A DNA stretch of 64,000 nucleotides from Octopus sinensis (Eukaryota), in contig NW_021833300.1 in assembly GCF_006345805.1 (NCBI RefSeq), forward strand, positions 1-64,000, in the 5' to 3' direction. Shown here piece by piece: positions 2,961 through 60,854 of the stretch. The notes under the pieces are model-generated. The model was not told the DNA's origin, ran no database searches, and saw nothing but the letters and a program-made list of their open reading frames with translations. A program made the position numbers and the translations under genes. The first letter of the stretch is position 1, and each line of letters starts with the position of its first letter.

Positions 2961-2991
<31 letters not shown>

Positions 2992-3264: not shown

Positions 3265-3345
<81 letters not shown>

Positions 3346-6064: not shown

Positions 6065-6074
6065 TATATATATA

Positions 6075-6126
<52 letters not shown>

Positions 6127-7012: not shown

Positions 7013-7414
7013 TGTTAGCTTAATACTCAAGGATTAAGGAGCTGAAATTATAGATAGTTGAGCTGAAGGAGTAAATTTAGGAGGAAGCGTTTGTGATAAG
7101 TCATTCTGAAAACGACGAGGTTGAATGACGGGAAGCAACCCAGAATAAACGTACAAGAGCAAGAGGGGAGGTAACTCTGTGTAAAGTGCTTATGTGCACA
7201 TGCAGATATATGCGTACATTTACTGCGTACATGGTGATCACAGTATATATCCGTTAGTATGTATGTGTATATAGTTTTAACGTATGTGTGTGCGTGTACG
7301 AGAATTTCGTTGAACGCAGGGGCTACATATGAATATGAAAAAGATGAAAGGCCTTTTCCTAGCCATAGGCATATAAAACCCGTTTCCCGGATTCTGTGGC
7401 GTATATACTCCTCA

Positions 7415-11655: not shown

Positions 11656-11660
<5 letters not shown>
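10200..11660 (-). mobile_element. 5'-truncated R4/Dong-like RLE non-LTR retrotransposon
   Basis: ORFs 11446-11721, 10954-11415 and 10310-10999: RT end (YKYLG), zinc knuckle CRICGDGQETLNHIISGC, restriction-like endonuclease NRPDIV..LIDVSIP..EKLSKYKDL; (TAA)n tail. Confidence 0.85.
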
Positions 11661-11702
<42 letters not shown>

Positions 11703-11896
11703 GTATTATGTATGTGCGCATGTATGTAAGAATATGCAGTTTCTGGAATAATATATATTCTACTTGAAAATCACTGAGATGACCATGGCTTCGTAATTTA
11801 TTTCTAGGTCTGGAAAAAATTAATGAAAAAACTGTTAGAAATTAATGAAGTTAATTCTAAATTTCCCGATGATCATCACACGCACACATGCACCAC

Positions 11897-11975
<79 letters not shown>

Positions 11976-13311: not shown

Positions 13312-13482
13312 TTATGAGTAAGGAGATGATATATACTTCGCATTGAAAGTCAACACTTGTGGATCCCACGAAAACGGCTTTGCAAGGATTTTATCTTTCT
13401 GGAACCATGATGTAGAATTGGTCCCTGTTCCATTGAAAACGAATGCAAAATAATCCAAACTTGATTTCACCCGAAATTCCAC
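13312..13482 (-). CDS. Copy B exon 3 (terminal) of secreted PAN-domain gene
   Basis: Acceptor tttccatttgcag|GTG, phase 0; VEFRVKSSLDYFAFVFNGTGTNSTSWFQKDKILAKPFSWDPQVLTFNAKYISSPYS*. Confidence 0.85.
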   Translation of the reverse strand: MEFRVKSSLDYFAFVFNGTGTNSTSWFQKDKILAKPFSWDPQVLTFNAKYISSPYS

Positions 13483-15059: not shown

Positions 15060-16130
15060 AGGAGAGGATCTCTGTGGAACAGGATGACTGCCTGCAACAA
15101 GGTCGCGCCCCTGCTTGGATGACAAGCGAGCGAACGCTGTTAATGCGTCAAGGACCCCTTGAAAGGATCTTGCAAACATCAGGTAAGTAACAATCTATTA
15201 CCTAAAGAACAGAAAGGCTGCAGGAACCAAAGTAGGGCAACAAAAGATCACCTATTAGATGATAAAATGATAATTAGAAATCGCAGAGGTGGATGATTGG
15301 CAGGAGTGAATGTAGCATGGTTAGATTATAAAAAAGCGTATGACATGGTAGCACACAGTTAGATAAGTGAAACAAGGAGCAGGTTTGAAATAGCAACAAA
15401 AAAAAGCATGGAGAAAATGCTAAATGAAAGTATGGAACATTGGAATACTGAAATGATCGGAGAAAAACAAAAACCCGGAAAAGTGAACATCAGACGTGGA
15501 ATATTTCAAGGTGATAGCTTATCTCCGTAACTATTCGAATTGGCCATGAAAAGGGAAAATTGCTTACGATTTGGTTAAAGGAAATGGTCAGATAAATCAT
15601 CTCCTTTTCATGGACGATACAAAAGTTTATGCGATAAATGAGAAACAGTTTGAAAATCTTGTGAATATTATCCGCATTTTCTCAAATAACGTTGCTATGG
15701 AATTTGGGATAGAAAAGTGCGCTATATTGAAAATAAAAGGAGGAACATTTGAAAGAAGCGAGGGAATTGAAATGCCAAATGGGCAAAGAATGGGAGCAGT
15801 TGAGAAAGGACGGTGGTAAAAGTAGTTGGGAATACTGAAAGCAGACGAAATAAAAATGAATGAAACAAACGACCAATTGGGAGTACACAAGGAGAGTAAG
15901 AAAATCATTGCAGTCAAAGCTGAATTCCAAAACCCTTATTAAAGCAAAGATCAGTGTCATTAATCAGATACCCGACGAAAATGATGAAAATCTAAATAAA
16001 AGGCCGGACCTTAGTCCCCAAATCTCGCTAGTGAAACAGAAAAAAAAAGGAGAAATAAATACGAGAGGAATAGGTTTCTATGCGTCGTGTATATTTTATA
16101 GCAACACTCTTGCCACAAAATGAAAACGCT
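15060..16130 (+). pseudogene. Degenerate R4/Dong-like RT fragment in intron 2 of copy B (mirror at ~53810-54920, -)
   Basis: KKAYDMV, RRGIFQGDSLSP and INHLLFMDD..MEFGIEKCAIL motifs, with stops and frameshifts. Confidence 0.75.
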
Positions 16131-16362
16131 GCACAATATTCCATTGAAATTTAGAAGGAAAATTAGTCTGGATCTAGTTCTATCGTGAAACCCCGCCAAA
16201 GAAACTTGCTAACATAAAAAGATAGATTTTAAAAATGAAACAAACATCAGAAACTGAAATTAAACATTTAAAAGAAAACACTAGTAATTATTGTAAAACA
16301 ACAACAAATATGTAGATTGGTTATTAAATGAGAATCATCTTGAAATTCTAAAAATTCATTAC

Positions 16363-16454
16363 CTTTTCAATAGGCAAATTGTCCCAGTACAAATAAATAG
16401 GGCTTTTCTTAAGTGAGGTTTTGGTCATCTCAAATACTTTCTGCCGGTTTTTAC
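16363..16454 (-). CDS. Copy B exon 2
   Basis: tgattcag|GT...GAAAAG|gtaatg; 92 nt, phase 1 to phase 0; encodes (S)KNRQKVFEMTKTSLKKSPIYLYWDNLPIEK and joins exons 1 and 3 in frame. Confidence 0.85.
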
Positions 16455-16498
16455 CTGAATCATCAAAAACAAATTTAAGTATACAAAAAAGATGTTAA

Positions 16499-16900
16499 CC
16501 CTTGAACGGCGGGAAAGGGTTGCAGGAATGTCTGTGACAAACGGACAATAATCGAAAAAATCTCTTTTATATTTATTTTCATTAAATTAAGCACAAAAAC
16601 TAAAATAATTGTTGGTCTTAAACAAATGGAGAAGAATCGGTGCACCTTTTCCATCCAGAGCTAGTTGAAGCATTAGTCTCTTCCGTATTATCTAAAACAT
16701 CGTTTTCAACATCATCTGCTTCATTTGATGATGAAATAAAATCAGAAAAACACTTCTTCATCGCTGTTTAAATCATCTATTTACGACTGGATTTCTCCCA
16801 TTGATAAGGACCGCTTACGCTTAGGCGCATTTAATTTAGCAGTCGCTCCAGCCTCAACTGATGATGGTCATATCTGTGTAAACGTTTTGTGACACCAATA
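16499..16900 (-). mobile_element. Possible piggyBac-like remnant (mirror at ~53100-53507, +)
   Basis: TTAA|CCCTTGAACGGCGGG terminus and an acidic N-terminal-like frame (KRKRSLSMGE..DDLNSDEE..DDVENDVLDNTEE); only one end found. Confidence 0.4.
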
Positions 16901-16929
16901 GGATCTTACAGAAAAAGGAGGTGCATTCC

Positions 16930-17790
16930 AGAAATTTCCAGGATTTTTCAGGAAAGACATTTATTTATTTCAAAGAAAGCTCAGTGAGCCGGTCCGATTC
17001 CTCGTTCCACATCTTGCTCAGGATTGTGTTTGGTGGAAAGCACACTTCTAAGGCATGTAAAGTGATTAACTCATTCCAGTGGTGTGCCCGAAATTATGAT
17101 GTTAAAGTGCAGAAGGGCAGAATTCGGTATTGATTAGGCGAAGAACTGAGATTTCTTAGAATTTACAGTGAGCTCAAAACGTTGATACGCATTGGTGAAA
17201 AAATTGACAGCTTTTTGCTGTTCTAAGTTTGAGTGACTGCGTGACCACGTTGCCATCGACGAAGTGAAGTTCTGAGATTCGCTTGGAACTGGTAAGATTC
17301 TTTGACCGAAACCTCACCAGGGTGAAGAGTCTTTCATCAAAACGATATCTGATGTCCTTTCCCAGCTGATCCGAGGGAAGTTCATAGATCATTGCAGCAA
17401 GGTATAGGGAGAAAAGCATAGTAGCGGGTACGCAAACTTGTTTCAATCCAGATGTAATTGGGAATTCTTCTGAGGGTCCATCACGAGGAAGGAAACGCCC
17501 AGTCATACCATTGTATGATCAGGGAGAAGAAATAATCAAGGGCCGTCCATATGGCTGGTCTTGGTACTCTATCAAAACATTTTGCAGATCATAAAAGATA
17601 AGGAAAATTCGGTTTTGTTGTTCTCGATACTTGCTTTCGAATTGTCTGGCGCAGATCGTGTCTATGGTTCCAAGTAATATTCGGAAAACACACTGGGACT
17701 CTGGAAGGATTCTTTCTGCGATGACGTGGAGACCATTCAAGGGTATTGAAGATCTATCCTAAAATAATAAGTAGCGAGATTACACGATGG
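16930..17790 (-). pseudogene. Degenerate RTE-clade RT fragment in intron 1 (mirror at ~52170-53050, +)
   Basis: ERILPESQC.FR...TID.I..RQ.Q.K.REQ..IFYDLQ.AFDRVPR and GLKQ.CV.A.MLFSLY motifs. Confidence 0.75.
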
Positions 17791-17899
17791 TTTCCATAAG
17801 ATTTTCTATCTCCTTTCTTGAATATACTTATTATTAGAGCACTAAGTGCGTGAGGTCGGCAATGTCTCGTGTATGAGTCTACGTATGAGTATAGCTTCC

Positions 17900-18140
17900 T
17901 TAATTCTTAAATTACCCACATTTCTTTCACTGACTCAATTGTGACTGTTATGCTTTTGTCGGTGTTCCGGCATCTTTTCTGAAGGAGGAGGCTATCGTGT
18001 TAAGATGTTCTTTGATGCGGATGTGTAACGGTTTTGTTGTGCTACCCACATAGAACTTGTTGCATTTGTTACATCGTATTCTATTCACAGCATTTACCCG
18101 TTGGCATAAATCTATGTCACGGATGGGACAGTTTGTTAGC
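17900..18140 (-). mobile_element. Penelope-like GIY-YIG fragment in intron 1 (mirror at ~51840-52060, +)
   Basis: CPIRDIDLCQRVN..RIRCNKCNKFYVGSTTKPLHIRIKEHL. Confidence 0.7.
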
Positions 18141-18428
18141 TTGCATTGATTGTTGTCCCTTGTTCGTTTCTTTGCGAGCATATATACATAAAACATACAA
18201 ATCTGCGCATAGATAAATTCATACATAACATACATACAAACTTACAAACAAAAATACCCTGTTGTTGATGTTGCAATTCCAGTGAAGGAGCCTGGATTTA
18301 GGTTAGAAACCGGTTCGTTCTCTATTGGCAGGAAATCCTGAAATAAACTGAATAATAATAATATACATACATACATACATACATACATACATACATACAT
18401 ACATACATACATACATCAATGTCTGTGT

Positions 18429-18469
<41 letters not shown>

Positions 18470-18551
18470 AGTGTGTGTGTACGTGCGTTTGTAGAACAAT
18501 TGGGAATACAGAAATTAGAAAAAATATGCCAGAAAATTGTGATTTACATAC

Positions 18552-18882
18552 TGTTTCCGGAGAGTAAAATATACGATAAACACGTGCAATCCTGATCTTT
18601 AATTTCTTTGTTGTAAAGCGATCGATGCATATAACACGGGCCATTACAATAGCTAAAATATTGGCACTCATCGCGGGAAATACACAGACTCGCACATTCC
18701 AAACGAGATGACGCGGTTTTTGTACTTTTATTCTGATCTGTTAAGCATCTTGATGTTGTGGTTTCTTCGAAGAGACCCTCTCTATTCGTTGGTTCTCCGG
18801 AAGTTACAAGAGTCACGAAAAGCAAAAGTGTCAAAGCTGGCAGCAGAAGAGGCGTCGAATGGTACTGAATTGTTGTCTCCAT
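18552..18882 (-). CDS. Copy B exon 1: signal peptide + PAN/Apple-like domain
   Basis: Hydrophobic N-terminus LLLPALTLLLFVTLVTSG; C-x3-C-x5-C-x2-F-x-Y-C-x3-C pattern (ECASLCISRDECQYFSYCNGPC); donor AACA|gtatgt; acceptor tatttttcag two bases before the ATG. Confidence 0.85.
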
Positions 18883-18910
18883 TCCTGAAAAATATACAAG
18901 TATACATACT

Positions 18911-18944
<34 letters not shown>

Positions 18945-20490
18945 CGATAAACCTCTGGAGAAATTCGTTAGACCCAGGTTATATACCGAAACAGTTTCTA
19001 TCCCAGTCGGTCATCCCGGTTTTCAAACAGGGAAACAGATCCCTCGCAGTCAACTATCGCCCAATCTCACTCACCTCCCACATCATTAAAGTGTTTGAAA
19101 GAGTGTTAAGATCAAGGATAGCTGACTTCCTGGAGACCCACAAACTCCTAAATGCAAATCAGCATGGCTTTCGCTGCGGCAGGGACTGTCTAACACATCT
19201 CTTACACCACATTGCAGATGTACTCAAAGCCTTGGGAACAGGTTCGAACTCTGACGTCATATATCTTGACTTCAGTAAAGCGTTCGACAGGGTAGACCAT
19301 AATATCCTACTCTCAAAATTGGCAAATGTTGGAATCCGGGAAAAAGTTCTACACTGGATTAAGTATTTCCTGGCGAATAGAACACAACATGTTGTAGTTG
19401 ATGGAGTCCACTCAAGCCCAGCAAAAGTCACCAGCGGTGTTCCCCAGGGGACTGTTTTGGGGCCGCTACTCTTCATAATTTACATAAACGACCTTTCCAG
19501 TTTCGTAAATTACTGCAAAGTGAAAATATTCGCTGATGACACTAAGCTCCAGCAAATCGTCAATGAAGAAGCAGACCGAACTCAACTCCAGTCTGATCTA
19601 TATGCTGTGAGTCAATGGGCAGACAGAAACAAAATGCAACTGAATGAGGGAAAATTTGAGCTGATGCATTTTGGAAGAAATTCCTCAGTAAAACAACCAT
19701 ACTCTCTTCCTTCATGGGAACCGCTCACAGCCTCTAACAACATCAGAGACCTAGGTGTAATTGTTGATGACGATCTGAGTTGGAGTGCACACATCAACAA
19801 GAAGGTCGATATAGCTCGTATGATGAGTTCCTGGATCTTAAGAGCTTTCCGGTCCAGAGAACAAGGTGTCATCACCACTTTTTCCCTCACTCGTACAGCC
19901 ACACCTTGAATACTGCTGCCCACTGTGGTCTCCCCATACAAGACAAAACATCTCAAGGATTTAATCACCCAGAGGGCACTCACTAAATGAATTGAAGGCA
20001 TGGCTGCTCGCGATTATTGGGATCGCCTTAAAGCCTTGAAACTCTACTCTCTCCAGCGTCGCCGCGAGCGGTACATCATTTGTACGATGTGGAGAATATA
20101 CCGCCAACTTTGCCCAAATGACCTGAACATTAGCTTCAAGGTTCATCCAAGACTGGGACCACGGGCCATACGACCCCTGCCCAGTTCAAGATCACAACAT
20201 ACATGTATACTGCAACATAATTTCTTTTCCTCAACAGGCCCTGCCCTATTTAACATTGTCCCGAAGGGGATCAAAGAGGAAAAGGGCCCCATCAACTTTA
20301 AACGGAGTCAGGATAGATTCCTTCAAAGAATACCAGATAAGCCCGCCATAATTGGATACAACTCACCCAACAAGAACTCACTACTTTTGACAAAACTTGC
20401 CTTAAACAGGATTCGCATAATCCTATCAGGTGGTGCTATTAAGTTAGACATGGCCTGGACCAATCTTTGGTCGAAACATATCTAAGTTAT
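18945..20490 (+). mobile_element. 5'-truncated CR1/L2-group LINE (left arm only)
   Basis: ORF 19091-19909 with RT motifs QHGFR, YLDFSKAFDRVDH, GVPQGTVLGP, FADD; C-terminal SLQRRRERY; tail gaccaatctttggtcgaaacatatctaag. Confidence 0.85.
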
Positions 20491-32159: not shown

Positions 32160-35100
32160 TGCCCTCGAGACAAAAATCCCTCCCTTGGAGAGAACAAAAA
32201 GATAAAGAAAAAGAAAAATATAAAAGAAGGAAGAAAAGCGCACTAACCACTCCTGAAAGACGATATGCGTATGTGGTGAGCGGTAACCCAACAAATGGCC
32301 AGCTTCACCCAGATGTGAGAAGGGCAGCAGCTGAACAGCAATCTTTTTTGTGCATGGCACAAAAAAGTGTTCAGCAGCTGATCTGGCTACAAGCACAAAG
32401 CTGGAACTACCACCACATAAGGCCACCACCAACAGATGCAGGATGGCCACCACAGACACCAACACCAACACACACACCACAAAAATATGTCTACTGAACG
32501 TAGGAGGGCTGCTGCGCGGCAACTGTAAAAGGAAAATCTCATTCCTGAGAGACCTTGTGACATGCAATCAAGCTATATGCATGGCACTCACAGAAACGCA
32601 TCTTGGACACGATATAGGGGATGCAGAAATACACATGCCGCAATATGCAGTCTTACGCTCAGATAGAAAAGGGGGGAGCCATGGTGGAGTTGCAGTGTAC
32701 ATCCGAGATGACCTCACGCCCAGGTCCTGTTGTCATATTCAAACACAGTGTGTAACACTCAAATTGTACATATAAGACAACTGAATATCGTCATATGTAC
32801 TACGTATCGCCCACCAGATGCCCCAAATCACTCAGGCATGTTTGAAGACTGCCTAACAAAAATAGGATGACTTTAACTTCCCCAATGTGGAATGGCCTGG
32901 GGGGGGGCAGATGCTCTCAGGGATGACACACCATCAGCAGGCACAGGCAGAGTCCCTGCTCCATCTGACAAATGCCTCTTTCATGGAGCAAATAGTTCTG
33001 CAACCAACAAGGGCAGATAATATACTGGATCTCTGCTTCACAAACAATATGGATATTATCCATAGTGTTAAAGTGATGCCGACAATGATCTCGGATCACA
33101 ACATAATAGAGCTATCTATGTTTGGACCAAAAGCTCCCGTAGACACACAGCCTATACGAAGCATCCACCATCTCTCCAACTTAAACTTTCATAAAGTAAA
33201 CTGGAAGTTGATTGAGAAATAGATCCTCAAACAGGATTGGCCTAAATGTCTCTCCACACCGGACATTAACATGAAACACAAACACTTCATGTCCATAATA
33301 CAAGCCATATGTGACAAATATATCCCAGTGTGCTGGGCCAGCACACACAAAAACAAAAACAGGATCCCTAGAGAAAGGAAGATTCTTATGAGACGACGGA
33401 CAAGGATTGCGAACCGCCTGAGCAAGCACACCAAAAGTGGTGAGAAGTCTCGGCTCGAGAGAATGCTAATGGAAATTGAGGAAAGTCTGCATCAGTCCCA
33501 TGGAAAGGAGAGAGCAGATAAAGAAGCTTGGGTAATAGAAAATATAAAATCAAACCCTAAAGCTATCTTTATGTTTGCCAAAGAGACAGCTACAGTGCAC
33601 CAGAGAATAGGACCTCTTTTCCAAAAAGATGTCTCTCTCACAAGAAATCCCACGAGGATAAGTGAAATACTGAAAGAACGATTCCAAAGTGTGTTCACTA
33701 CACCTCTAGGACACAGGCAAGTAAACAACCCAGAAGAATTCTTTGCCACTTTACCTGCGGCCAAAGAGGCAAACATTGAGTACATCAACATTGAAGATGA
33801 TGATATCACACTAGCCATAGATGAGATTAACACAGACTCAGCTGCTGGACCTGATGGATTTCCAGCGATTCTTCTCAAATCGTGCAAACGAGCCCTTGCG
33901 AAACCGCTACAGCTTCTTTTTCAGAGATTTCTTGCAAGTGGTAAGCTCCCAGTCAAATTGAAAGAGGGGGTAATATGCCCTATCCATAAGGGAGGTAGCA
34001 GAGCAGATGCTAAAAATTATAGGCCTATCTCTCTGACCTCACACATCAGCAAAGTCATGGAACGAATAGTCCGCAAGAAACTAATCATGTTCCTTGAAGA
34101 AAATGACTTGCTGTCTGACACCCAGCATGGATTTCGACCAAGTAGAAGCTGCCTAACACAGCTCCTGCAACACTATGACTGGGTGTTAAAACAGCTACTA
34201 AATGGCTCAAATGTGGATGTAATATATCTCGACTTTGCAAAAGCCTTTGATAAAGTCGACCATGGTATGATCTGTCACAAGCTGCGTGTTCTCGGCATAG
34301 GCGGAAAACTTGGAGAGTGGCTGCACAACTTCCTAAAAGACAGAAGACAGGCAGTTGTGAGCAATGGAGCCACCTCCAAGGAAACACAAATAAAAAGCGG
34401 TGTTCCACAGGGCACTGTCTTGGGGCCACTGCTGTTAATAGTGGCTCTTTCAGACATGCCTTCAGTTGCTACGATGGCCACCCTTGCTAGCTATGCAGAT
34501 GACACAAAAGTCTCCCACACAATACAAAACCCTGAAAATATTGCGCATCTGCAACAGGAGTTGGATACAATATACAGGTAGGTGGCCTGAGGACAACAAC
34601 ATGCAGTTTAATGCAGGTAAGTTCCAGGCCCTGCGCTACCGGCACACAAAGGTAAACGACGTGTAGACTGGATACACTGGCCCAAGAAGAATTGCAATCC
34701 CTGAGTCAAAATCAGTGCGTGACCTGGGCATTGACATAATAAATGATGCATCTTTCCAAGTGCATATTACTAATCTGGTGATAAAATGCAGACGGCTAGC
34801 TGGATGGTTTCTCCGAACTTTCAGAACAAGAGAGAAGGAGACACTGGTGGTCCCCTGGAAAACATTCGTCCCCAGCCGCTTGGACTACTGCTCCCAACTT
34901 TGGTCACCACACAATATAAAACTAACAGCAGAATTCGAAGCAGTTCAGAGAAGCTACACAAAGAAGATCGTCTCAATGCAAAATATCAGCTATTGGGAAA
35001 GACTGAAAGTATTAAATATCTTCTCCCTAGAGCGGAGGCGGGAGTGATATGCGGTGATATACATCTGGAAAATCCTGGAGGGTCTTGTCCCAAACTTTGG

Positions 35101-35475
35101 CATTCAAAGTTACCCCAACCGCAGAACGGGGCGCCACTGCATGGTGCCAAATATTCCAACATCACCATCAAAATACAGATCAAGATACTGCAACAGCTTG
35201 GGTTTCAGAGGACCACAGCTCTTTAACATCCTCCCTAAATGCCTGATAGACTTACATGGTGTGGATGTGGGTTTCTTTAAAACTAAACTGGATGTCTTCT
35301 TGTCGGGAGTCCCAGATGAACCTACCTCACGAGAGGAGACGCAGATGCGGGCAGCAGCATCGAACTCCCTTGTTGATCAAGTGCCACGTATCAGAGGTGG
35401 ATTCACATATTAGTGTAACTCATTCAGCGGTGGTGCCCCGGCATGGCCGCGGCCTTCGGGCTAAAACATTTTTAA
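32160..35475 (+). mobile_element. CR1/L2-group LINE ORF2 (APE endonuclease + RT), disrupted
   Basis: APE motifs (LLNVGGL, LTETHL, RSDR.G.SHGGVAVY), RT ORF 33271-34581 (NYRPISLTS, QHGFR, DFAKAFDKVDH, GVPQGTVLGP, YADD), stops/frameshifts, ttaagga-type tail. Confidence 0.88.
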
Positions 35476-35572
35476 GGATTTAAAGATTATATAAATATTT
35501 TATGCGTTTAAGCAGCCATTTATTCCACTGAATATAATCAGTTAATTTTAAGAATCGATTAGAAGATATTCA

Positions 35573-45197: not shown

Positions 45198-47093
45198 AAA
45201 TCCTTAAATCCTTAAAAATGTTTTAGCCCGAAGGCCGCGGCCATGCCGGGGCACCACCGCTGAATGAGCTACACTAATTTGTGAATCCACCTCTGATACG
45301 TGGCACTTAATCAACAAGGGAGTTCGATGCTGCTGCCCGCATCCGCGTCTCCTCTCGTGAGGTAGGTTCATCTGGGACTCCCAACAAGAAGAGATCCAGT
45401 TTAGTTTTAAAGAAACCCACACCCACACCGTCTAAGTCTCTCAGGCATTTAGGGAGGATATTAAAGAGCTCTGAACCCCAAGCTGTTGCAGTATCTGGAC
45501 CTGTATTTTGATGGTGATGTTGGAATCCTTGGCACCATGCAGTGGCGCCCCGTTCTGCGGTTGGAGTAACTTTGAATGCCAAAGTTTGGGACAAGACCCT
45601 CCAGGATTTTCCAGATGTATATCACCGCATATCTATCCCGCCTCCGCTCTAGGGAGAAGAGGTTTAATACCTTCAGTCTTTCCCAGTAGCTGATATTTTG
45701 CATTGAGACGATTTTCTTTGTGTAGCTTCTCTGAATTGCTTCGAGTTCTGCTGTTAGCTTTATATTGTGTGGTGACCAAAGTTGGGAGCAGTAGTCCAAG
45801 CGGCTGAGGACGAATGTTTTCCAGAGGACCATCAGTGTCTCCTTCTCTCTTGTTCTGAAAGTTCGGAGAATCCATCCAGCTAGCCGTCTGCATTTTATCA
45901 CCAGATTAGCAATATGCATTTGGAAAGATGCATCATTGCTCATGTCAATGCCCAGGTCACGCACTGATTTTGACTCAGGGATTGCAATTCTTCCTGGGCC
46001 AGTGTATCCAGTCTTCACATCATTTACCTTTGTGTGCCAGTAGCGCAGGGCCTGGAGCTTACCTGCATTAAACTGCATGTTGTTGTCCTCAGCCCATCTG
46101 TATATTGTGTCCAGCTCATGTTGCAGATGCGCAATATTTTCAGGGTTTTGTATTGCGTGGGAGACTTTTGTGTCATCTGCATAGCTAGCAAGGGTGGTCA
46201 TCGTAGCAACTGAAGGCATGTCTGAAAGGGCCACTATGAACATCAGTGGCCCCAAGACAGTGCCCTGTGGGACACCGCTTGTTATTTGCGTTTCCTTGGA
46301 GGTGGCTTCATTGCTCACAACTGCCTGTTTTCTGTCTTTTAGGAAGTTGTGCAGCCACTCTCCAAGTTTCCCGCCTATGCCACGCAGTTTGTGACAGATC
46401 ATACCTTGATCCACTTTATCAAAGGCTTTTGCAAAGTCGAGATATATTACATCCACATTTGAGCCATTTAGTAGCTGTTTCAACACCCTGTCATAGTGTT
46501 GCAGGAGCTGTGTTAGGCAGCCTCTACCTGGTCGAAATCCATGCTGGGTGTCAGACAGCAAGTCACTTTCTTCAAGGAACATGATTAGTTTCTTGCGGAC
46601 TATTCGTTCAATGACTTTGCTGATGTGTAAGGTCAGAGAGATAGGCCTATAATTTTTAGCATCTGCTCTGCTACCTCCCTTATGGATAGGGCATATTACC
46701 CCCTCTTTCAATTTGACTGGGAGCTTACCACTTGCAAGAAAGCTCTATAAAGAAGCTGTAGCGGTTTTGCAAGGGCTCGTTTGCATGATTTGAGAAGGAT
46801 CGATGGGAATCCATCAGGTCCAGCAGGTGAGTTTGTGTCAATCTCATCAATGGCTAGTGTGATATCATCATCTTCGATGTTGATGTACTCAATTTTTGTC
46901 TCTTTGGCCGCAGGTAAAGTGGCAAAGAATTCTTCTGGGTTGTTTACTTGCCTGTGCCCTAGAGGTGTAGTGAACACACTTTGGAACTGTTATTCAGTAT
47001 TTCACTTATCCTCGTGGGCTTTCCTGTGAGAGAGCCATCTTTTTGGAAGAGAGGTCCTATTCTCTGGTGCACTGTGAGTGTCTCTTTGGCAAA
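45198..47093 (-). mobile_element. 5'-truncated copy of the CR1/L2-group LINE family at 32160-35475
   Basis: 416-aa RT ORF 45461-46711 highly similar to 33960-35220; (ttaagga)n tail at ~45195-45215. Confidence 0.88.
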
Positions 47094-47109
47094 CGTAATA
47101 TATATATAT

Positions 47110-50960: not shown

Positions 50961-51035
50961 AGATACATATATATATATATATATATAATATATATATAAT
51001 ATATATATATATTATATTATATATATATATATATA

Positions 51036-51093
<58 letters not shown>

Positions 51094-51147
51094 GATATAT
51101 GTATTTATGTATGTATGTAAGTATGTATACTTGTATATTTTTCAGGA

Positions 51148-51478
51148 ATGGAGACAACAATCCAGTACCATTCGATTCTTCTTCTTCTGCCAGCTTTGAC
51201 ACTTTTGCTTTTCGTGACTCTTGTAACTGCCGGAGAACCAACGAATAGAGAGGGTCTCTTCGAACAAACCACAACATCAAGATGCTTAACAGATCAGAAT
51301 AAAACTACAAAAACCGCGTCATCTCGTTTGGAATGTGCGAGTCTGTGTCTTTCCCACGATGAGTGCCAATATTTTAGCTATTGTAATGGCCCGTGTTATA
51401 TGCATCGATCGCTTTACAACAAAGAAATTAAAGATCAGGATTGCACGTGTTTATCGTATATTTTACTTTCCGGAAACA
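51148..51478 (+). CDS. Copy C exon 1: signal peptide + PAN/Apple-like domain
   Basis: tatatttttcag|gaATG; METTIQYHSILLLLPALTLLLFVTLVTAG..CLTD..ECASLCLSHDECQYFSYCNGPC..DCTC; donor AACA|gtatgt at 51479, phase 1. Confidence 0.85.
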
Positions 51479-53551
51479 GTATGTAAATCACAATTTTCTG
51501 GCATATTTTTTTCTAATTTCTGTACTATATTTTCATCATTACCCAATTGTTTTACAAATGAACCCCCTCCACACACATACACACACACTCACACACAAAC
51601 AAACATACACACACATGTATGTATGTATATCATTATTCAGTTTATTTCAGGATTTCCTGCCAATAGAGAACGAACCGGTTTCTAACCTAAATCCAGGCTC
51701 CTTCACTGGAATTGCAACATCAACAACAGGGTATTTTTGTTTGTAAGTTTGTATGTATGTTATGTATGTATGTATCTATGCGCAGATTTGCATGTTTTAT
51801 GTATGTATGCTCGCAAAGAAACGAACAAGCGACAACAATCAATGCAAACTAACAAACTGTCCCATCCGTGACATAGATTTATGCCAACGGGTAAATGTTA
51901 TGTATAGAATACAATGTAACAAACGCAACAAGTTCTATGTGGGTAGCACAACAAAACCGTTACACGTTCGCATCAAAGAACATCTTAACACGATAGCCCC
52001 CTCCTTCAGAAAGGATGCCGGAACACCGACAAGAGCATAACAGTCACAAATGAGCCAGTGAAAGAAATGTGGGTAATTTAAGAATTAAGGAAGCTATACT
52101 CATACGTAGACTCATACACGAGACATGGCCGACCTCACGCACTTAGTGCTCTCATAATCACTATATTCAAGAAATGAGAAAATCTTATGGAAACCATCGT
52201 GTAAACTCGCTACTTACTAATTTAGGAAAGATCTTTGCTCCAATACACTTGAACGGTCCCCACACCATCACAGAAAGAATCCTTCCAGAATCCCAGTGTG
52301 TTTTCCGAGCATTACTTGGAACCATAGACACGATCTGCGCCAGACTATTCCAAAGCAAGTATCGAGAACAACAAAACCGAATTTTCCTTATCTTTTATGA
52401 TCTGCAAAATGCTTTTGATAGAGTACCAAGACCAGCCATATGGACGGCCCTTGATTATTTCTTCTCCCTGATCATACGATGGTATGACTGGGCGTTTCCT
52501 TCCTCGTGATGGACTCTCAGAAGAATTCCCAATTACATCTGGATTGAAACAGGTTTGCGTACCCGCTACTATGCTTTTCTCCTTATACCTTGCTGCAATG
52601 ATCCATGAACTTCCCTCGGATCAGCTGGGAAAGGACATCAGATATCGTTTTGATGAAAGACACTTCACCCTGGTGAGGTTTCGGTCAAAGAATCTTACCA
52701 GCTCCAAGCGAATCTCAGAACTTCACTTCCTCGATGGCAACGTGGTCATTCGGTCACTCAAACTTAGAACCGCAAAAAGCTGTCAGTTATTTAACCATTG
52801 CGTATCAACGTTTTGAGCTCACTGTAAATTCTAAGAAATCTCAGTTCTTCGCCTAATCAATCCCGAATTCTGCCCTTCTGCACTTTAACATCATAATTTC
52901 GGACACACCACTGGAACAAGTTAATCACTTTACATGCCTTAGAAGTGTGCTTTCCACCAAACACAATCCTGAGCAAGATGTGGAACGAGGAATCGGACCG
53001 GCTCACTCAGCTTTCTTTGAAATAAATAAATGTCTTTCCTGAAAAATCCTGGAAACTTCTGGAATGCACCTCCTTTTTCTTTAAAATCCTAGTGGTGTCA
53101 CAAAAAGTTTACACAGATATGACCGTCATCAGTTGAGGCCCGATCGTCTGCTAAATTAAATGCGCCTAAGCGTAAGCGGCCCTTATCAATGGGAGAAATC
53201 AAGTCGTAAATAGATGATTTAAACAGCGATGAAGAAGTGTTTTTCTGATTTTCTTTCATCATCAATTGAAGCAGATGATGTTGAAAATGATGTTTTAGAT
53301 AATACAGAAAAAAATAATGCTTCAACTAGCTCTGGATGGAAAAAGTGCACCGATTCTTCTCCATTTGTTTAAGACCAACAATTATTTTAGTTTTTGTGCT
53401 TAATTTAATGAAAATGAATATAAAAATTTGCTTTATGAAAAAAGATTTTTTCGATTATTGTCTGTTTGTCACACACATTCATGCAACACTTTCCCGCCGT
53501 TTAAGGGTTAACATCTTGTGTGTATACTTACATTTTTTATTGCTGATTCAG

Positions 53552-53643
53552 GTAAAAGCTGGCAGAAAGTATTTGAGATGACCAAAAACTCATTTAAGAA
53601 AAGCCCTATTTATTTTTACTGGGACAATTTGCCTATTGAAAAG
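53552..53643 (+). CDS. Copy C exon 2
   Basis: ttttttattgctgattcag|GT...GAAAAG|gtaatg; 92 nt encoding (S)KSWQKVFEMTKNSFKKSPIYFYWDNLPIEK; phases match exons 1 and 3. Confidence 0.85.
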
Positions 53644-54929
53644 GTAATGAATTTTTAGAATTTCAAGATGTTTCTCATTAAATAACCAATCTACATATTT
53701 GTTGCTGTTGTACAATAATTACTAGTGTTTTCTTTTAAATGTTTAATTTCAGTTTCTGATGTTTGTTTCATTTTTAAAATCTTTCTTTGGCGGGGTTTCA
53801 CGATAGAATTAGATCCAGACTAATTTTCCTTCTAAATTTCAATGGAATATTGTGCAGCGTTTTCATTTTGTGGCAAGAGTGTTGCTATAAAATATGCACG
53901 ACGCAGAGAAACCTATTCCTCTCGTATTTATTTCTCCTTTTTTTTCTGTTTCACTAGCGAGACTTGGGGACTAAGGTCCGGCCTTTTATTTAGATTTTCA
54001 TCATTTTCGCCGGGTATCTGATTAAGGACACTGATCTTTGCTTTAATAAGGGTTTTGGAATTCAGCTTTGACTGCAATGATTTTCTTACTCTCCTTGTGT
54101 ACTCCCAATTGGTCGTTTGTTTCATTCATTTTTTATTTCGTCTGCTTTCAGTATTCCCAACTACTTTTACCACCGTCCTTTCTCAACTGCTCCCATTCTT
54201 TGCCCATTTGGCATTTCAATTCCCTCGCTTCTTTCAAATGTTCCTCCTTTTATTTTCAATATAGCGCACTTTTCTATCTCAAATTCCATAGCAACGTTAT
54301 TTGAGAAAATGCGGATAATATTTACAAGATTTTCAAACTGTTTCTCATTTTTCGCATAAACTTTTGTATCGTCCATGAAAAGGAGATGATTTATCTGACC
54401 ATTTCCTTTAACCAAATCGTAAGCAATGTTCACTTTTCATGGCCAATTCGAATAGTAACGGAGATAAGCTATCACCTTGAAATATTCCACGTCTGATGTT
54501 CACTTTTCCGGGTTTTTGTTTTTCTCCGATCATTTCAGTATTCCAATGTTCCATACTTTCATTTAGCATTTTCTCCATGCTTTTTTTTTTTGTTGCTATT
54601 TCAAAACTGCTCCTTGTTTTACTTATCTAACTGTGTGCTACCATGTCATACGCTTTTTTCTAATCTAACCATGCTACATTCACTCCTGCCAATCATCTAC
54701 CTCTGCAATTTCTAATTATCATTTTATCATCTAATAGGTGATCTTTTGTTGCCCTACTTTGGTTCCTGCATCCTTTCTGTTCTTTAGGTAATAGATTGTT
54801 ACTTACCTGATGTTTGCAAGTTCCCTTTCAAGGGGTCCTTGGCGCATTAACAGTGTTCGCTCGCTGGTCATCCAAGCAGGGGTGCGACCTTGCTGCTGAA
54901 GACAGTCATCCTGTTGCACAGCAAACCTC

Positions 54930-55610
54930 TCTCTTCTTCTTCTTCTTCTTCTTCTTCTTCTTTCTTGTCTTCTCTTCTTTCTTTTCTTCTTTTCTGCTTC
55001 TTCTTGTCTTCTTCTTCTCTTCTTTCTTCTTCTTCTTCTTCTTTCTTCTCTTCTTCTTCGTCTTCGCCTTCTTCTTCTTCTTCTTCTTCTTCTTCTCTTC
55101 TCTTCCTTTCTTGCTCTTCAATCCGGCTTCTTTCGTTCTCTTCTTCTTTCTACATCTCTTATAATCTTCTTTTCATCTTCTTATTTCTTCTTCTTCTTCT
55201 TCTTCTTCTTTTTCTTCTTCTGTCTCTTTTCTATGTCTTTATTCTTCTTCTCTTTCTCTCTTCTTTCTCTTCTTCCTATCTTCTTCTTTCTTCTTATTCT
55301 TGCTTCTTTAATTCTTCTTCTTCTTCTTCTTCTTCTCTTCTTCTTCTTCTTTTCTAATTCTTCTTAATCGTCTTCTTCTTCTTCTTCTTCTTCTTCTCTA
55401 ATTATTCTTCTATTTTAATCATTTTTCTCTCTTCTTCTTCTTCTTCTTCTTTTTCTTCTATTCTTTCTTCTTCTTCTCTTTTCTTCTCTTCTTCTTCTAA
55501 TTCTTCTTCTATTCTTCTTCTTCTTCTTCCTTCTTCTTTCTCTTCTTCTTCTCTTCTTTTTCTTCTTCTTCTTCTTCTTCTTCTTTTTCTTTCTTTTCTT
55601 CTTATTAGTT
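54930..55610. repeat. Degenerate (CTT)n tract
   Basis: ~680 bp here versus a ~150-bp (GAA)n tract at the homologous 14915-15060. Confidence 0.85.
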
Positions 55611-57071
55611 ATATATTGTTATTATTGTATTATTATTATTATTATTATTAGTAGTAGTAGTAGTATAGTAGTAGTAGTAGTAGTAGTAGTATTTTTATTG
55701 TTATTATTATTATTATTATTATTATAAAAGAATCAGAAGAATTAGAGCATAGAACACAATGCTCGTGGTATTTAATTCCGGATCTTTATTTTCCGAGTTC
55801 AATTTGCGCCGAGGTCGGCTTTGCCTTTCATCCTTCAAGGAACGATAGCATAATGTGACAAACGTCATCAGATCGTAGAGACGCGGGATTTCATAGACAG
55901 CAACATAACCGAGAGTGTCTGGATATTGAATCAGTGTGTTGACGAGGAATACTTCTAGGTTACGAAAGAGACTGGTACAAATGGATCAGAATGTGGAATG
56001 GTTCAATCCCGTCATCGGTGCTTTGGTGTAAGAAGAGCGCGAAGGTTAAAAGGCATTATGAGCATTATAACTAAGAAGAAAAGGGGATTTAAGGAGGAGT
56101 TTGGAAGGCGATGAATTAACACCTGAATTGGATCGATGAGGAATAAATATTTTGAAGTAGAATAGCAAAGAATTTTTACTGCTAAGATTGAAATAAGAAT
56201 GGTGAGTGGTTATAAGTGTAGGAATATAGGGTTGAGTAGACATGAGATGGAGAAAGATGGAGAGAGATTATGAGAAGGTTCTGTGTCAGCGAGGAAAAAC
56301 GTTTGTCTTGCATTTTAAAAGGGAGAGGTGGAAGGATGAAATTCACGAATATGTAGATGGGACAGTAAAAATGCTTTTAATTCGAGACGAACTTCAGAAA
56401 AGCTAAACTCTACCAGGGTCAAAAGAACTTGTTGGACACACCTACACGCGTACCCCAGCATTTGGTCAGAAGCTACCGTCCCTCTGGTATCCGTTTCACC
56501 TAAGAGTCTTGACCAAGGAAGAGGCAGATCAAAAGCCCCTTTCTTCCGTTCCTGATATCACTCTTCATTCCTCCACAGAACATCGATATGTCTTTGATGT
56601 GGGATCGATTGTTGCTGGTTTCGGCTATTCTTTTATCCTGATTTTGTCAGGGTTTTCTAGTTCCTATAGATGCAACAAAACCTTTAGAAAGACTCCGAAA
56701 TCATGACTCATTAGTTAGTAGTCTGATTCTCTGTCTCGTAAGTCAGCCACATTTTCCTCTCAAACCCAATCACTTTCTGTCTTAATTTTGCACTTCTAAC
56801 GCGACATAGCATCTCGTTTTCTCATTTTCCTTCCTTCTGTCTGTCTGTATCTCTCTCTCTCTCCTCCTCTTCCTCCTATGTCTTGTCTTCTCTACTCTTT
56901 TTCTCCTGCACTCAATGTCTCACTCTTCCCCCACCACTGTTCTCTCCATCTCATTCTCGCCCTCCTACTCTCTCCTTATATCACATCCTAGTCTCCTTTC
57001 TCTTCCTACAACTCTGCCATCCCTCATTCTCTGAGATTTGTCACTTGTTTGAGTTTACTTTCCATTTGCAG

Positions 57072-57242
57072 GTGGAATTTCGGTTGAAAAAAGAAGCTAG
57101 TTCTTATGCATTCGTTTTCAATGGAACAGGGACCAATTCTACATCGTGGTTCCAGAAAGATAAACTCCTTGCAAAGCCGTTTAAGTGGGATCCACACACT
57201 GTGACTTTCAATGCGAAGTATATATCATCTCCTTACTCATAA
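57072..57242 (+). CDS. Copy C exon 3 (terminal)
   Basis: tttccatttgcag|GTG; VEFRLKKEASSYAFVFNGTGTNSTSWFQKDKLLAKPFKWDPHTVTFNAKYISSPYS*; spliced CDS 331+92+171 = 594 nt = 197 aa + stop. Confidence 0.85.
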   Translation: MEFRLKKEASSYAFVFNGTGTNSTSWFQKDKLLAKPFKWDPHTVTFNAKYISSPYS

Positions 57243-58358
57243 TTAACATCTTTAATTACTTAATAATTGTTCTTTTGAACACTTTCACGGTGTATATATA
57301 AGAAGAAAGTTCACAGATATACTTTATGTCTTATTGTTGTATAATATTATAATTCCATAATAATAATCCTTTCTCCCGTAGGCAGAAAGTCTGACAGTTT
57401 GTTGGGGCGGGCGGGGGGGGGTTAGTCGATGGCATCGATACCAGTGTCAAACTAGTAATCATTCCAACGACCCCCGAAAGGGTGATAGGCACAGTCGACC
57501 TCAGCGGAATATGAACTCAGGATGTATAGACGGACAAAATACTGCTAAGCATTTTATCCGGCATGCTAAAGATTCTGCCAACTCGCTGCCTTATAATAAT
57601 GATAATGATAATGTTTTCGTTATGAACCTTAAGGTTTGACAAAAAGATCGATGAGGCTCAAATTGATTTTGTGTTGGATTACATTAAAAAAAAACATGTA
57701 AACAGAAAATAACAAAAATATAAGAAAAACAATTTATCAATTGTAATATATTAGTTTCAGTTACCCGAACTTTACCATTGCGTATGACAGCAGGAGGGTA
57801 GAAGTCAAAAGAAAAAGTGGAAATAAGGAAGAGTACGATATTTCTTACAAATACTTCAGTAGTAAGTAAAACATTGCCTCTTGATTTCAGTGTAATTGAT
57901 TGTATAACACTGTGTTGGCGTACGCGAATGCATGCATGCATGTGTGTGTGTGTGTGTGTGTGTGCATGTGTGTGTGAATGCGCGCACAGGTCTGGGTTTC
58001 AAGAAGCATTGACTCATACATATAAATCTTTTAAATAGTTTTTCTTTAAAGCCAAAACAATGCAAGTTGTAACAAAATATTAATAATACAAGTCAGTGGT
58101 TTTTACTCTTCTCTAGTATTTCAGTATTTCGGAGCAAGGAATCCTTCTTCGGGAAATTTACGGAGAAACGGTGCTGATAACTGTTTTCCCTGCTCTCTGG
58201 GGTGTGATTATGAAGAGTTGGTTTCTGTTGCTATACACTGAACCTCAAAAGAAACACGACATGTGTATGACTGTGAAATATGTTTTAATTTCTTTATGGC
58301 TGAGATGAATTTTGATAAATCTGATAAAGTCATACTCTTGGATGCATTTTGACCTCCG

Positions 58359-60066
58359 TCTATGGGTCGTTGTCATGTGTTCTGGTAGAATGCGGATCTT
58401 TGGGTCGTTGTCATGTGCTCTGGTAGTAGGCGGTTCTATGGGTCGAGGTCATGTGCTCTGGTAGTAGGCGGTTCTATGGGTCGTGGTCATGTGCTCTGGT
58501 AGAAGGCGGATCTATGGGTCGTGGTCATGTGCTCTGGTAGTAGGCGGATCTATGTGTCGTTGCCATGTGTTCTGGTAGTAGGCGGATCTATGGGTCGTGG
58601 TCATGTGCTCTGGTAGTAGGCGGATCTATGGGTCGTGGTCATGTGCTCTGGTAGTAGGCGGATCTATGGGTCGTGGTCATGTGCTCTGGTAGTAGGCGGA
58701 TCTATGTGTCGTTGCCATGTGTTCTGGTAGTAGGTGGATCTATGGGTCGTGGTCATGTGCTCTGGTAGTAGGCGGATCTATGGGTCGTGGTCATGTGCTC
58801 TGGTAGTAGGCGGATCTATGGGTCGTGGTCATGTGCTCTGGTAGTAGGCGGATCTATGGGTCGTGGTCATGTGCTCTGGTAGTAGGCGGATCTATGGGTC
58901 ATTGTCATGTGCTCTGGTAGTAGGGGATCTATGGTCGTGGTCATGTGCTCTGGTAGTAGGCGGATCTATGGGTCGTCGTCATGTGCTCTGGTAGTAGGCG
59001 GATCTATGGGTCGTGGTCATGTGCTCTGGTAGTAGGCGGATCTATGGTCGTTGTCATGTGCTCAGGTAGTAGGCGGATCTATGGGTCGTGGTCATGTGCT
59101 CTGGTAGTAGGCGTATCTATGGGTCGTGGTCATGTGCTCTGGTAGTAGGCGGATCTATGGGTCGTGGTCATGTGCTCTGGTAGTAGGCGGATCTATGGGT
59201 CGTGGCCATGTGTTCTGGTAGTAGGCGGATCTATGGGTCGTGGTCATGTGTTCTGGTAGAATGCGGATCTTTGGGTCGTTGTCATGTGCTCTGGTAGTAG
59301 GCGGATCTATGGGTCGTTGCCATGTGTTCTGGTAGAATGCGGATCTTTGGGTCGTGGTCATGTGCTCTGGTAGTAGGCGGATCTATGGGTCGTGGCCATG
59401 TGTTCTGGTAGTAGGCGGATCTATGGGTCGTGGTCATGTGTTCTGGTAGAATGCGGATCTATGGGTCGTGGTCATGTGCTCTGGTAGTAGGTGGATCTAT
59501 GGGTCGTTGCCATGTGTTCTGGTAGTAGGCGGATCTATGGGTCGTTGTCATGTGTTCTGGTAGAATGCGGATCTTTGGGTCGTTGTCATGTGCTCTGGTA
59601 GTAGGCGGATCTATGGGTCGTGGTCATGTGCTCTGGTAGTAGGCGGATCTATGGGTCGTGGTCATGTGCTCTGGTAGTAGGCGGATCTATGGGTCGTTGT
59701 CATGTGCTCTGGTAGTAGGCGGATCTATGGGTCGTGGTCATGTGCTCTGGTAGTAGGCGGATCTATGGGTCGTGGTCATGTGCTCTGGTAGTAGGCGGAT
59801 CTATGGGTCGTGGTCATGTGCTCTGGTAGTAGGCGGATCTATGGGTCGTTGTCATGTGCTCTGGTAGTAGGCGGATCTATGGGTCGTGGTCATGTGCTCT
59901 GGTAGTAGACGTATCTATGGGTCGTGGTCATGTGCTCTGGTAGTAGGCGGATCTATGGGTCGTGGCCATGTGTTCTGGTAGTGGGCGGATCTATGGGTCG
60001 TGGTCACGTGCTCTGGTAGTAGGCGGATCTATGGGTCGTGGCCATGTGTTCTGGTAGTGGGCGGAT
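58359..60066. repeat. 38-bp GC-rich minisatellite, ~45 units
   Basis: Unit gtgctctggtagtaggcggatctatgggtcgtggtcat (e.g. 58605 to 58643), with the variant gttctggtagaatgcggatctttggg interspersed. Confidence 0.92.
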
Positions 60067-60439
60067 CCAGCACATCGAGATTGTAGGTCGTGTATGTATG
60101 TATAAATGTATGTATGTATGTATGTATGTATGTGTAAATGTATGTATGTATGTATGTATGTATGTATGTATGTATGCATGTATGTATGTATGTAGGTGTG
60201 TGTGTGAGAAAGTTGGGGGTGGATTCAGTAATAGGTTGAATAGGTAGATTGCTAGAAATCGGATCTGATATATCACCAACTCGCCTCACTCCTGCCTTTC
60301 CGTTTTCGGAAAATAGGTGCACAGTTATTTGCGGAATGGTCAAATTAATTTCAATGACACAAAAACCTGAAATATTATCAATTTTATTTAGTGTTTTCAG
60401 CGGTCAACTTAGAAACAAACTTAACTTTTTATAAGGATA

Positions 60440-60553
60440 TATGTGTATGTATGTATGTATGTATGTATGTATGTATGTATGTATGTATGTATGTATATAT
60501 GTATGTATGTATGTAAGTATGTATGTATGTATGTATGTATGTATGTATGTATG

Positions 60554-60584
<31 letters not shown>

Positions 60585-60854
60585 GTTTGTATGTATGTAT
60601 GTATGTATGTATGTATGAATGTATGTATGTATGTATGTATGTCTGTATGCATGTGTGTGTATGTATATATATGTATATATATATGGTGGGGCGTGTTTGC
60701 GTGTGTGCGATGATTATCGGCAAATTTCGAGTTAATTTCATTAAATTCTAACAATTTTTTCATTATTTTTTTTCCAGATGTATATATTTACGAAGCCATA
60801 GTCATCTCAGTGATTTTGAAGTAGAATATATATTATTCCAGAAACTGCATATTC

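Follow-up and report, generated by a model that had tools for sequence, protein, structure and literature searches.

We analysed the first 64,000 nucleotides (nt) of Octopus sinensis contig NW_021833300.1 (hereafter the window), a stretch of AT-rich and repeat-rich animal DNA that carries two members of a multigene family, copies B and C, and part of an older third paralog, A. B and C lie head-to-head, separated by 32 kb, on the arms of an inverted segmental duplication that self-BLAST aligned at 90–92% identity, introns included, and their introns differ by a p-distance of 0.067–0.073. Only the 3' exons of A fall within the window, its exons 1 and 2 being upstream. Our subject is a set of short hypervariable patches in the C-terminal domain of the encoded proteins and the processes that may have produced them.

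Gene models, domains and related copies

The exons of B and C, and those of A that we compared, are as follows.

51086-58328, plus strand: copy C arm of the inverted segmental duplication, partner of 12253-18944 (minus)
51148-51478, plus strand: copy C exon 1, starting with the ATG at 51148 and followed by a GT donor at 51479; encodes the signal peptide (about codons 1-29) and the PAN/apple-like domain with eight cysteines
53552-53643, plus strand: copy C exon 2, AG/GT boundaries; start of the C-terminal beta domain (SWQKVFEMT..IYFYWDNLPIEK)
57072-57217, plus strand: copy C exon 3, GT donor at 57218; the family consensus TFNA/NFSYP carries on in exon 4
57755-57861, plus strand: copy C exon 4, found in a tblastn search with family proteins and bounded by an AG acceptor and a GTAAGT donor; contains patch 3 (57783-57806) and the first part of patch 4 (57846-57861)
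60778-60824, plus strand: copy C exon 5, located by motif search and splice sites, ending ..VYIYEAIVISVILK and stop; end of patch 4 and conserved last strand
12253-18944, minus strand: copy B arm of the inverted segmental duplication, partner of 51086-58328 (plus)
18552-18882, minus strand: copy B exon 1, 96.7% identical to C exon 1 (11 mismatches)
16363-16454, minus strand: copy B exon 2, 5 mismatches relative to C
13337-13482, minus strand: copy B exon 3, with patch 1 at 13447-13470 (VKSSLDYF) and patch 2 at 13351-13389
12706-12812, minus strand: copy B exon 4, located by tblastn with family proteins and splice sites
11760-11809, minus strand: copy B exon 5, located by motif search and splice sites; one codon more than in C
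527-672, plus strand: paralog A exon 3, compared with its ortholog in comparison locus L005
1754-1866, plus strand: paralog A exon 4, from tblastn with family proteins and the alignment to the ortholog

The initial annotation of this locus gave a three-exon model, which is truncated: both copies contain five exons with canonical splice sites, including two extra 3' exons. That model also ended exon 3 at 57242, but the exon ends at 57217 and the last eight codons of the earlier reading (YISSPYS and a stop) are read-through into intron 3. Family proteins continue past exon 3 as TFNA/NFSYP.F.I...EA.VISVILK. The first 25 nt of intron 3 (57218-57242, with an in-frame TAA) are identical in B, C and two of the further copies introduced below (S2 and S4), and the O. 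sinensis database model P0007 terminates through the same read-through. A truncated isoform retaining intron 3 is possible.

Five O. sinensis loci, L001, L003 and L005 among them, were taken for comparison. Full B/C-type copies were present in three comparison loci, with S1 and S2 in L001 and S4 in L003, and intron distances among the five copies B, C, S1, S2 and S4 ranged from 0.046 to 0.09. The true ortholog of A lies in locus L005, where 110 of 5562 aligned nt differ across window positions 1-5648 (1.98%). Because true orthologous divergence is only ~2%, we rejected S1, S2 and S4 as orthologs of B and C; they are paralogs. The L005 copy at the syntenic position of B (SB) was 8.4% diverged from B with quite different patches. 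Along the syntenic stretch as a whole (L005 13795-26684 against window 1-14529), divergence was 2% over A, ~5% at 5.8-10.2 kb and 8.4% over the B-like copy. These values suggest gene replacement or conversion at the B position after divergence from the L005 lineage, and turnover of the cluster is rapid.

The predicted proteins of C and B are 240 and 241 amino acids (aa) long and 86% identical. All five copies had intact open reading frames (ORFs) of 239–241 aa with GT-AG splice sites throughout and shared the five-exon structure with identical intron phases (phase 1 for intron 1 of C). Family membership was supported by E values of 1e-103 to 1e-52, the five-exon plan and the FNGTGTNSTSWFQKDK motif.

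By inspection the N-terminus is a typical hydrophobic signal sequence. Residues ~38-101 resembled PAN domains in 7 of 12 family members, at 13–17 bits for PAN_1 (cut-off 21.4) and 15–17 bits for PAN_4 (cut-off 27), both below the Pfam gathering threshold. In a structure model of the database relative P0005 the same region had a predicted local distance difference test score (pLDDT) of 66–82, and the top Foldseek matches of that model were factor XI apple 4 (2j8j) and the plasminogen PAN domain (4dur), with probability 1.00 but an E value of 0.03 and a template-modelling score (TM, target) of 0.53. The cysteine core (C46, 63, 67, 73, 79, 83, 99 and 101) was the same in all five copies and was kept in most of the family. 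The rest of the protein forms a C-terminal beta domain of ~130 aa. A model of this domain from another database relative, P0012, which is 78% identical to C there, was all-beta with 8–9 strands (pLDDT 85). Foldseek returned no significant PDB neighbor for this domain model (best E 0.14, TM <0.35), and legume-lectin and LAMP fold assignments were rejected at probabilities of ≤0.14. None of 12 family members matched any Pfam family in the C-terminal domain even at E values up to 10, DUF7922 (PF25538) included. To judge from their sequences, the B and C proteins are probably secreted and N-glycosylated.

Hypervariable patches in the beta domain

Exon 3 of C contains two variable patches and the conserved segment that separates them.

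57084-57107, plus strand: patch 1, codons 146-153, LKKEASSY; predicted tip of the beta1-beta2 hairpin
57108-57164, plus strand: invariant segment AFVFNGTGTNSTSWFQKDK, with two N-x-T sequons (NGT, NST)
57165-57203, plus strand: patch 2, codons 173-185, LLAKPFKWDPHTV; predicted loop ahead of strand beta4

Comparing B and C codon by codon, we reproduced every count of the initial annotation. Exon 1 (51148-51478 against 18882-18552) had 11 nt differences in 10 codons, 7 of them nonsynonymous and 3 synonymous. All five differences in exon 2 (53552-53643 against 16454-16363) were nonsynonymous (S/N, W/R, N/T, F/L, F/L), and the 22 differences in exon 3 altered 12 amino acids and left 1 changed codon synonymous. 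Those in exon 3 formed the clusters LKKEASSY/VKSSLDYF and K-WDP-HTV/S-WDP-QVL, with LKKEASSY belonging to C on the plus strand, and patch 1 alone held 14 of the 22. The AFVFNGTGTNSTSWFQKDK segment and all eight cysteines were the same in both copies. That segment was invariant or nearly so family-wide, and paralog A varied in the same patches as B and C but also within this "invariant" motif.

Differences between B and C were compared with the variability of other family members, with variable columns defined as the top entropy quartile in nine sequences that excluded B, C and their nearest relatives. B/C differences were over-represented in these family-variable columns (odds ratio 4.1, p = 6e-4), and their clustering is beyond chance. 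At family-conserved columns the proportion of nonsynonymous differences (pN) between B and C was 0.023, compared with 0.068 in introns (p = 0.007). Three of the five exon-2 differences were at family-conserved positions.

The beta domain contains four such patches, of which the initial annotation had caught the first two. The pattern recurred in three O. sinensis paralogs, in the ortholog of A and in ~30 family members. When the variable residues were placed on the P0012 model, the patches coincided with loops or hairpin turns in its DSSP string, with patch 1 at the turn of residues 30-31 and patch 2 at the loop of residues 57-62. Patches 1 to 4 occupied the beta1-2, beta3-4, beta5-6 (turn) and beta7-8 (loop) connections of the model, and the connections between them were conserved, namely NGTGTNSTSWFQKDK (with two N-x-T sequons), NFSYP and R.SGN.E. 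This strict alternation suggests that one pole of the domain holds all four of the predicted variable loops. Hypothetically, such loops could bind a ligand.

The patches stood out from the surrounding introns. Exon 3 of C was ~75% identical to that of S1 and S2, compared with ~93–95% for the adjacent introns (~95% for the 100–150 nt on either side of the exon). The exon-3 differences in these comparisons, in-frame 3- and 6-nt indels included, formed two blocks flanking the invariant motif. Sliding-window diversity across the five copies was highest overall in patch 1 (0.42) and patch 2 (0.35). In the orthologous comparison of A with L005, all five exon-3 differences were nonsynonymous and all fell within the two patches, where ~50 nonsynonymous patch sites would be expected to yield ~1 change and the flanks differed by a uniform 2%.

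One change cluster was found outside the beta domain. Codons ~55-67 of S4 exon 1 (L003 7038-7368), within the PAN domain, read KYTSFLTECSFRC where the other four copies read KTASSRLECASLC. We found no match to this cluster in any sampled paralog, and it may reflect a conversion tract or a further local burst.

Selection, recombination and competing explanations

We fitted maximum-likelihood codon models to B, C, S1, S2 and S4 (F3x4, five-taxon tree, synonymous rate common to site classes). A single ratio of nonsynonymous to synonymous rates (omega) was 1.15–1.26 under M0 and did not differ from 1 (p = 0.25–0.48). With the variable columns assigned a priori, a two-partition model gave omega_cons of 0.65–0.72 and omega_var of 3.6–3.9, with a likelihood-ratio test statistic (LRT) of 40–42 across two topologies. 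M2a was favored over M1a (LRT 45.9), with an omega of 5.4 at 27% of sites. The residues with naive empirical Bayes (NEB) probabilities >0.9 under M2a were 149-151 and 153 in patch 1, 179, 183 and 184 in patch 2, 202, 207, 223 and 224 in exon 4, and 216, 227-229 and 233, plus 61 and 122. Exon 1 in contrast had an omega of 0.3–0.6.

The signal persisted under masking and local calibration. Removing codons ≤3 from a gap left an omega_var of 3.4 (p = 2e-7), and restricting the test to columns in which every pair differed by ≤1 nt left 3.2 (p = 1.5e-4). Together the masked variants, which strip most multi-nucleotide and misalignment effects, gave an omega_var of 2.8–3.4 (p ≤1.5e-4). Two further tests were important given the higher divergence of the 3' block relative to the 5' block: exons 3-5 alone gave an omega_var of 5–5.6 (p ~1e-8), and fixing branch lengths to 3x an HKY tree from 1309 local intron columns gave ~7. 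A class of codons with omega significantly >1 was thus found with M1a/M2a, with the a-priori partition and with the masked and locally calibrated variants, in data in which recombination is present.

Other results weigh against diversifying selection as the cause. The models were our own implementation fitted to five sequences only, and recombination can inflate site-model tests. In exons 3-5 omega_cons was ~1, and family-invariant framework residues were hit in both copies (W114R and F125L in B, L132F in C), which suggests that some constraint has been relaxed in the young copies. The B–C pair alone is weak evidence. Over the full coding sequence, the NG86 method counted 8.2 synonymous differences at 147.8 sites and 42.8 nonsynonymous differences at 572.2 sites, a ratio of nonsynonymous to synonymous divergence (dN/dS) of 1.37 (Fisher p = 0.47). 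Relative to the highest local intron rate (0.12), the B–C excess in variable columns was marginal per nucleotide (p = 0.05) and not significant per codon. The S1–S2 pair had almost no patch excess (pN 0.109, intron 0.08). Intronic low-complexity stretches (CT and G runs) reached diversities of 0.30–0.35, close to the patch peaks, and we rejected sliding-window diversity as sole proof. Patches include multi-nucleotide differences and indels, and patch 1 begins in an A-run (AAAAAA) where S1 and S2 have GAT repeats, so that slippage may feed it.

The claim that B and C diverged almost only at amino-acid-changing sites stands as a count but not as an excess over chance. Neutral simulation of 38 substitutions in exons 1-3 with the B–C intron spectrum yielded a mean of 8 synonymous codons, with ≤4 in 8% of trials. 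The B–C pair was likewise indistinguishable from a dN/dS of 1, an outcome that the initial annotation had named as counting against its inference. Pairwise dN/dS among the five copies was 0.77–1.37, significant in none of ten pairs, and we set it aside as uninformative, since conserved and fast sites cancel.

A gene-wide dN/dS near 1 and the few substitutions at family-invariant residues would also be expected if B and C were decaying duplicates under fully relaxed constraint. This is hardly credible. All five copies retain open frames and GT-AG sites despite 5–9% neutral divergence and frequent intronic indels (16 events per 2563 nt between B and C), and the low pN at conserved columns and the low omega of exon 1 both point to constraint. 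The probability of stop-free exons 1-3 in B and C under neutral substitutions alone was 0.11 by simulation. With intact frames and a framework omega <1, pseudogene evolution was refuted.

A second neutral account leaves the genes functional. The loops would be unconstrained (omega ~1), and conversion would homogenize the introns and framework while the loops, or an exon-3 block, keep an older coalescence. The gene-wide omega near 1 in all ten pairs agrees with this, and family-wide loop variability is also expected of neutral loops given a long time. So does the pattern along the locus, where a ~1-kb block around exon 3 and intron 3, non-coding sequence included, is 2–6x more diverged between B and C than mid-intron 2, and where exon 3 groups C with S4 but other regions group C with B. 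However, omega_var was still 5–7 when dS came from exons 3-5 or the local intron tree. An older block would lift synonymous and intron divergence too, and whole-exon import with neutral loops raises local dS and therefore cannot yield such values on local calibration. The intron adjoining exon 3 is ~95–100% identical, and the A/L005 pair has its patch excess between flanks of uniform 2% divergence. We regard unconstrained loops as unlikely, although they deserve real weight.

Recombination or gene conversion among the paralogs is demonstrable, and their history is a mosaic. Parsimony-informative splits were non-uniform along the locus, with sites uniting S2 and S4 chiefly in exon 1 and intron 1 and those uniting S1 and S2 chiefly in exons 3-4 (Mann-Whitney p = 1e-5). 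Sites uniting C with B (n = 36) were spread over the whole locus, and four of the nine uniting C with S4 were in exon 3. Divergence between B and C was 1.3–2% in mid-intron 2 and 10–12% around exon 3 and intron 3 (chi-square p = 2e-10). Such patchiness would arise because recombination or conversion among paralogs homogenizes introns and reshuffles segments.

With recombination established, the patches themselves might have been imported as short conversion tracts from unsampled paralogs, with homology in the invariant 57-nt motif as the hinge for combinatorial patch swaps. Selection on new mutations would then play no part. There are at least 25–30 family members as possible donors, and patch 1 of SB is nearly that of P0007 (KKASCDKVII against KKASGDKVII) while patch 2 is unrelated. 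Yet we found no donor for patch 1 or 2 of B or C among ~28 exon-3 sequences (annotated proteins and the five loci, covering O. sinensis, O. bimaculoides and O. vulgaris). The closest patch was that of P0012 to C, at 6 of 10 residues, whereas at ~2% divergence the ortholog of a donor should match nearly exactly. Tract ends would also need to coincide repeatedly with loop edges, and the selection signal stays in codon columns with single-nucleotide differences. We consider import alone improbable. The initial suggestion of patchwise conversion is thus partly supported, by the traces of paralog recombination; it is a candidate source of the patches, but "conversion only" has no donor among the sampled paralogs.

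A mutational or alignment artefact, whether slippage at the A-run and GAT repeats, compensated frameshifts or multi-nucleotide events, is very improbable. A gapped alignment of exon 3 reduces the 22 mismatches to 12 by +2/-2 and +1/-1 indel pairs, patch 1 opens with AAAAAA, both patches have 3–6-nt in-frame indels among paralogs, and the intronic low-complexity runs have comparable diversity peaks. But random substitutions at the same 22 positions matched or beat the gain from gapping in 22% of simulations, which leaves compensated frameshifts unsupported as the origin of the multi-nucleotide codon swaps. The omega_var of 3.2 in columns with ≤1-nt differences, and of 3.4 with near-gap codons removed, counts against an artefact in general, as do the changes between A and its ortholog, which are mainly single substitutions.

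On balance, diversifying selection on the patch loops is the best explanation, and we hold it to be somewhat probable. As evidence for it the B–C count did not hold up; the site-partitioned models of five paralogs (framework omega ~0.7, loop omega 3–7, p 1e-4 to 1e-10) and the A/L005 pair did.

Family relatives, cluster context and biological meaning

Protein searches found matches only in O. sinensis, O. bimaculoides and O. vulgaris, all of them labelled "uncharacterized" or else "Apple domain-containing", in a family of at least 25–30 members, and we found no paper on an octopus family combining PAN and this beta domain. Relatives in O. sinensis (LOC118768098/100/101, LOC118761632 and LOC118761643) and O. 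bimaculoides (LOC106867736 and LOC106880400) were 46–88% identical and share the five-exon plan, signal peptide, cysteine pattern, FNGTGTNSTSWFQKDK and variable loops. LOC118761643 is the true ortholog of paralog A, and no annotated protein among the relatives was identical to B or C. Several database models (P0001, P0002, P0007, P0013 and P0017) are cut short or extend into introns or pieces of transposons. In P0015 (O. sinensis LOC118764386, 402 aa) the C-terminal beta domain is tandemly duplicated within one protein.

The N-terminal 60–70 residues share the cysteine-rich pattern of PAN/apple domains (PF00024, PF14295, factor XI, plasminogen), but the hypervariable part of the octopus proteins falls outside that domain. 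A profile of the octopus family matched a 55–80-residue stretch (..Y.YW..L.I.KV....F.F.G.G.N.TSWF..) in other animals at E values of 1e-22 to 1e-4. A Dreissena polymorpha protein (KAH3750350.1) has the same PAN-plus-domain architecture. Uncharacterized Mytilus proteins matched too, as did multidomain proteins of amphioxus and sea star that carry EGF, C-type lectin, Sushi or ZP domains. The amphioxus protein P0032 had a partial DUF7922 match (32 bits, with no single stretch passing) that overlaps the region matched by the profile. From this distribution the beta domain appears to be an old extracellular module without an established name.

Other secreted families have diversified in animals, among them snail FREPs, amphioxus VCBPs and sea-urchin Sp185/333, and in cone-snail toxin genes the mature-peptide exon outpaces the introns in evolution. 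The octopus genes share with these systems a clustered multigene organization, a conserved signal and framework, and exon segments that evolve faster than flanking introns, and also have in common loop omega >1 and recombination among paralogs. There is no sequence or fold kinship between these systems and the octopus family. The family belongs to an established class, that of clustered secreted families with hypervariable loops.

The introns of the B/C-type copies carry conserved blocks and repeats. Within C intron 2, a block at 56637-56750 that is also found in B contains ~100 nt with zero differences in five copies, where the neighboring intron differs by 5–9%. It is the terminal exon of O. 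sinensis model P0002 (..GLLLPTDATKLFTKTPKSRLISY) and may function in regulation or as an alternative 3' exon. Similar blocks in C intron 3 (57607-57690) and C intron 4 (58107-58238; 12465-12343 in B) match the C-terminal tails of the O. sinensis models P0001 (FDKKIDEGTIDFVWDYI) and P0013 (ARNPSSGNLRRNGADNCFPC..), respectively, and are either alternative terminal exons or annotation run-ons. In intron 4 of C, moreover, a GC-rich 38-bp unit is repeated 45 times in a tandem array (58359-60067, 93% matches). This array is present in O. sinensis L003, L004 and the start of L002 and absent in B, S1 and S2, and its presence or absence is a marker that sorts the copies into two groups. Directly upstream of exon 5, the same intron has a (TGTA)n run of 60 units (60444-60685), and a long imperfect (TCT)n microsatellite of ~224 units occupies 54932-55603 in intron 2. 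A (TA)n run at ~51000-51090 forms the 5' border of the duplicated segment.

Transposon remnants are common in and around the genes. C intron 1 has a reverse-transcriptase fragment at 52147-52813 (RVT_1, E 2e-6) that is annotated as coding sequence in O. sinensis model P0017. The fragment is common to B and the O. sinensis copies, and its insertion therefore predates the duplications. The spacer that separates B from C is packed with long interspersed nuclear element (LINE)-type reverse-transcriptase fragments. It contains a 94% inverted repeat (33569-35488 and 45199-47098). LINE-type retrotransposon ORFs with RVT_1 or zf-RVT domains were found at the following positions.

10310-10999, minus strand: LINE-type ORF
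19091-19909, plus strand: LINE-type ORF
33271-34581, plus strand: LINE-type ORF
45461-46711, minus strand: LINE-type ORF

Under diversifying selection, B and C would both be functional, products of a recent duplication within a multigene family restricted to octopuses. Each predicted protein would consist of a signal peptide, a PAN/apple-like domain and the ~130-aa beta domain, and would be secreted. A conserved beta framework, including an invariant and probably N-glycosylated loop (FNGTGTNSTSWFQKDK), would present hypervariable sequence and length at every second inter-strand loop. The framework and PAN domain would be held by purifying selection while amino-acid changes and in-frame indels become fixed in the loops at several times the local neutral rate, an excess that we read as probable diversifying selection on a recognition surface. 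Recombination or conversion among paralogs would meanwhile homogenize the introns and reshuffle gene segments.

A bolder proposal is that the family constitutes a germline-diversified recognition repertoire. Four loops resembling complementarity-determining regions (CDRs), at one pole of an unsolved beta fold beside the PAN/apple domain and reshuffled via the invariant motif, might serve non-self, microbial or gamete recognition. This is speculative, and we think it doubtful as stated. Cephalopods have no adaptive immunity, and to our knowledge descriptions of diversified recognition gene families in this group are few. Should the loops simply be free of constraint, the locus would be a tandem family of the ordinary, fast-turnover kind. 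If they are under diversifying selection, the family would be a candidate recognition repertoire, or may have another arms-race role in reproduction or secretions, built on a domain without a solved structure, and the locus would be a compact case of recombination and selection acting jointly in a very young, fast-rearranging gene cluster.

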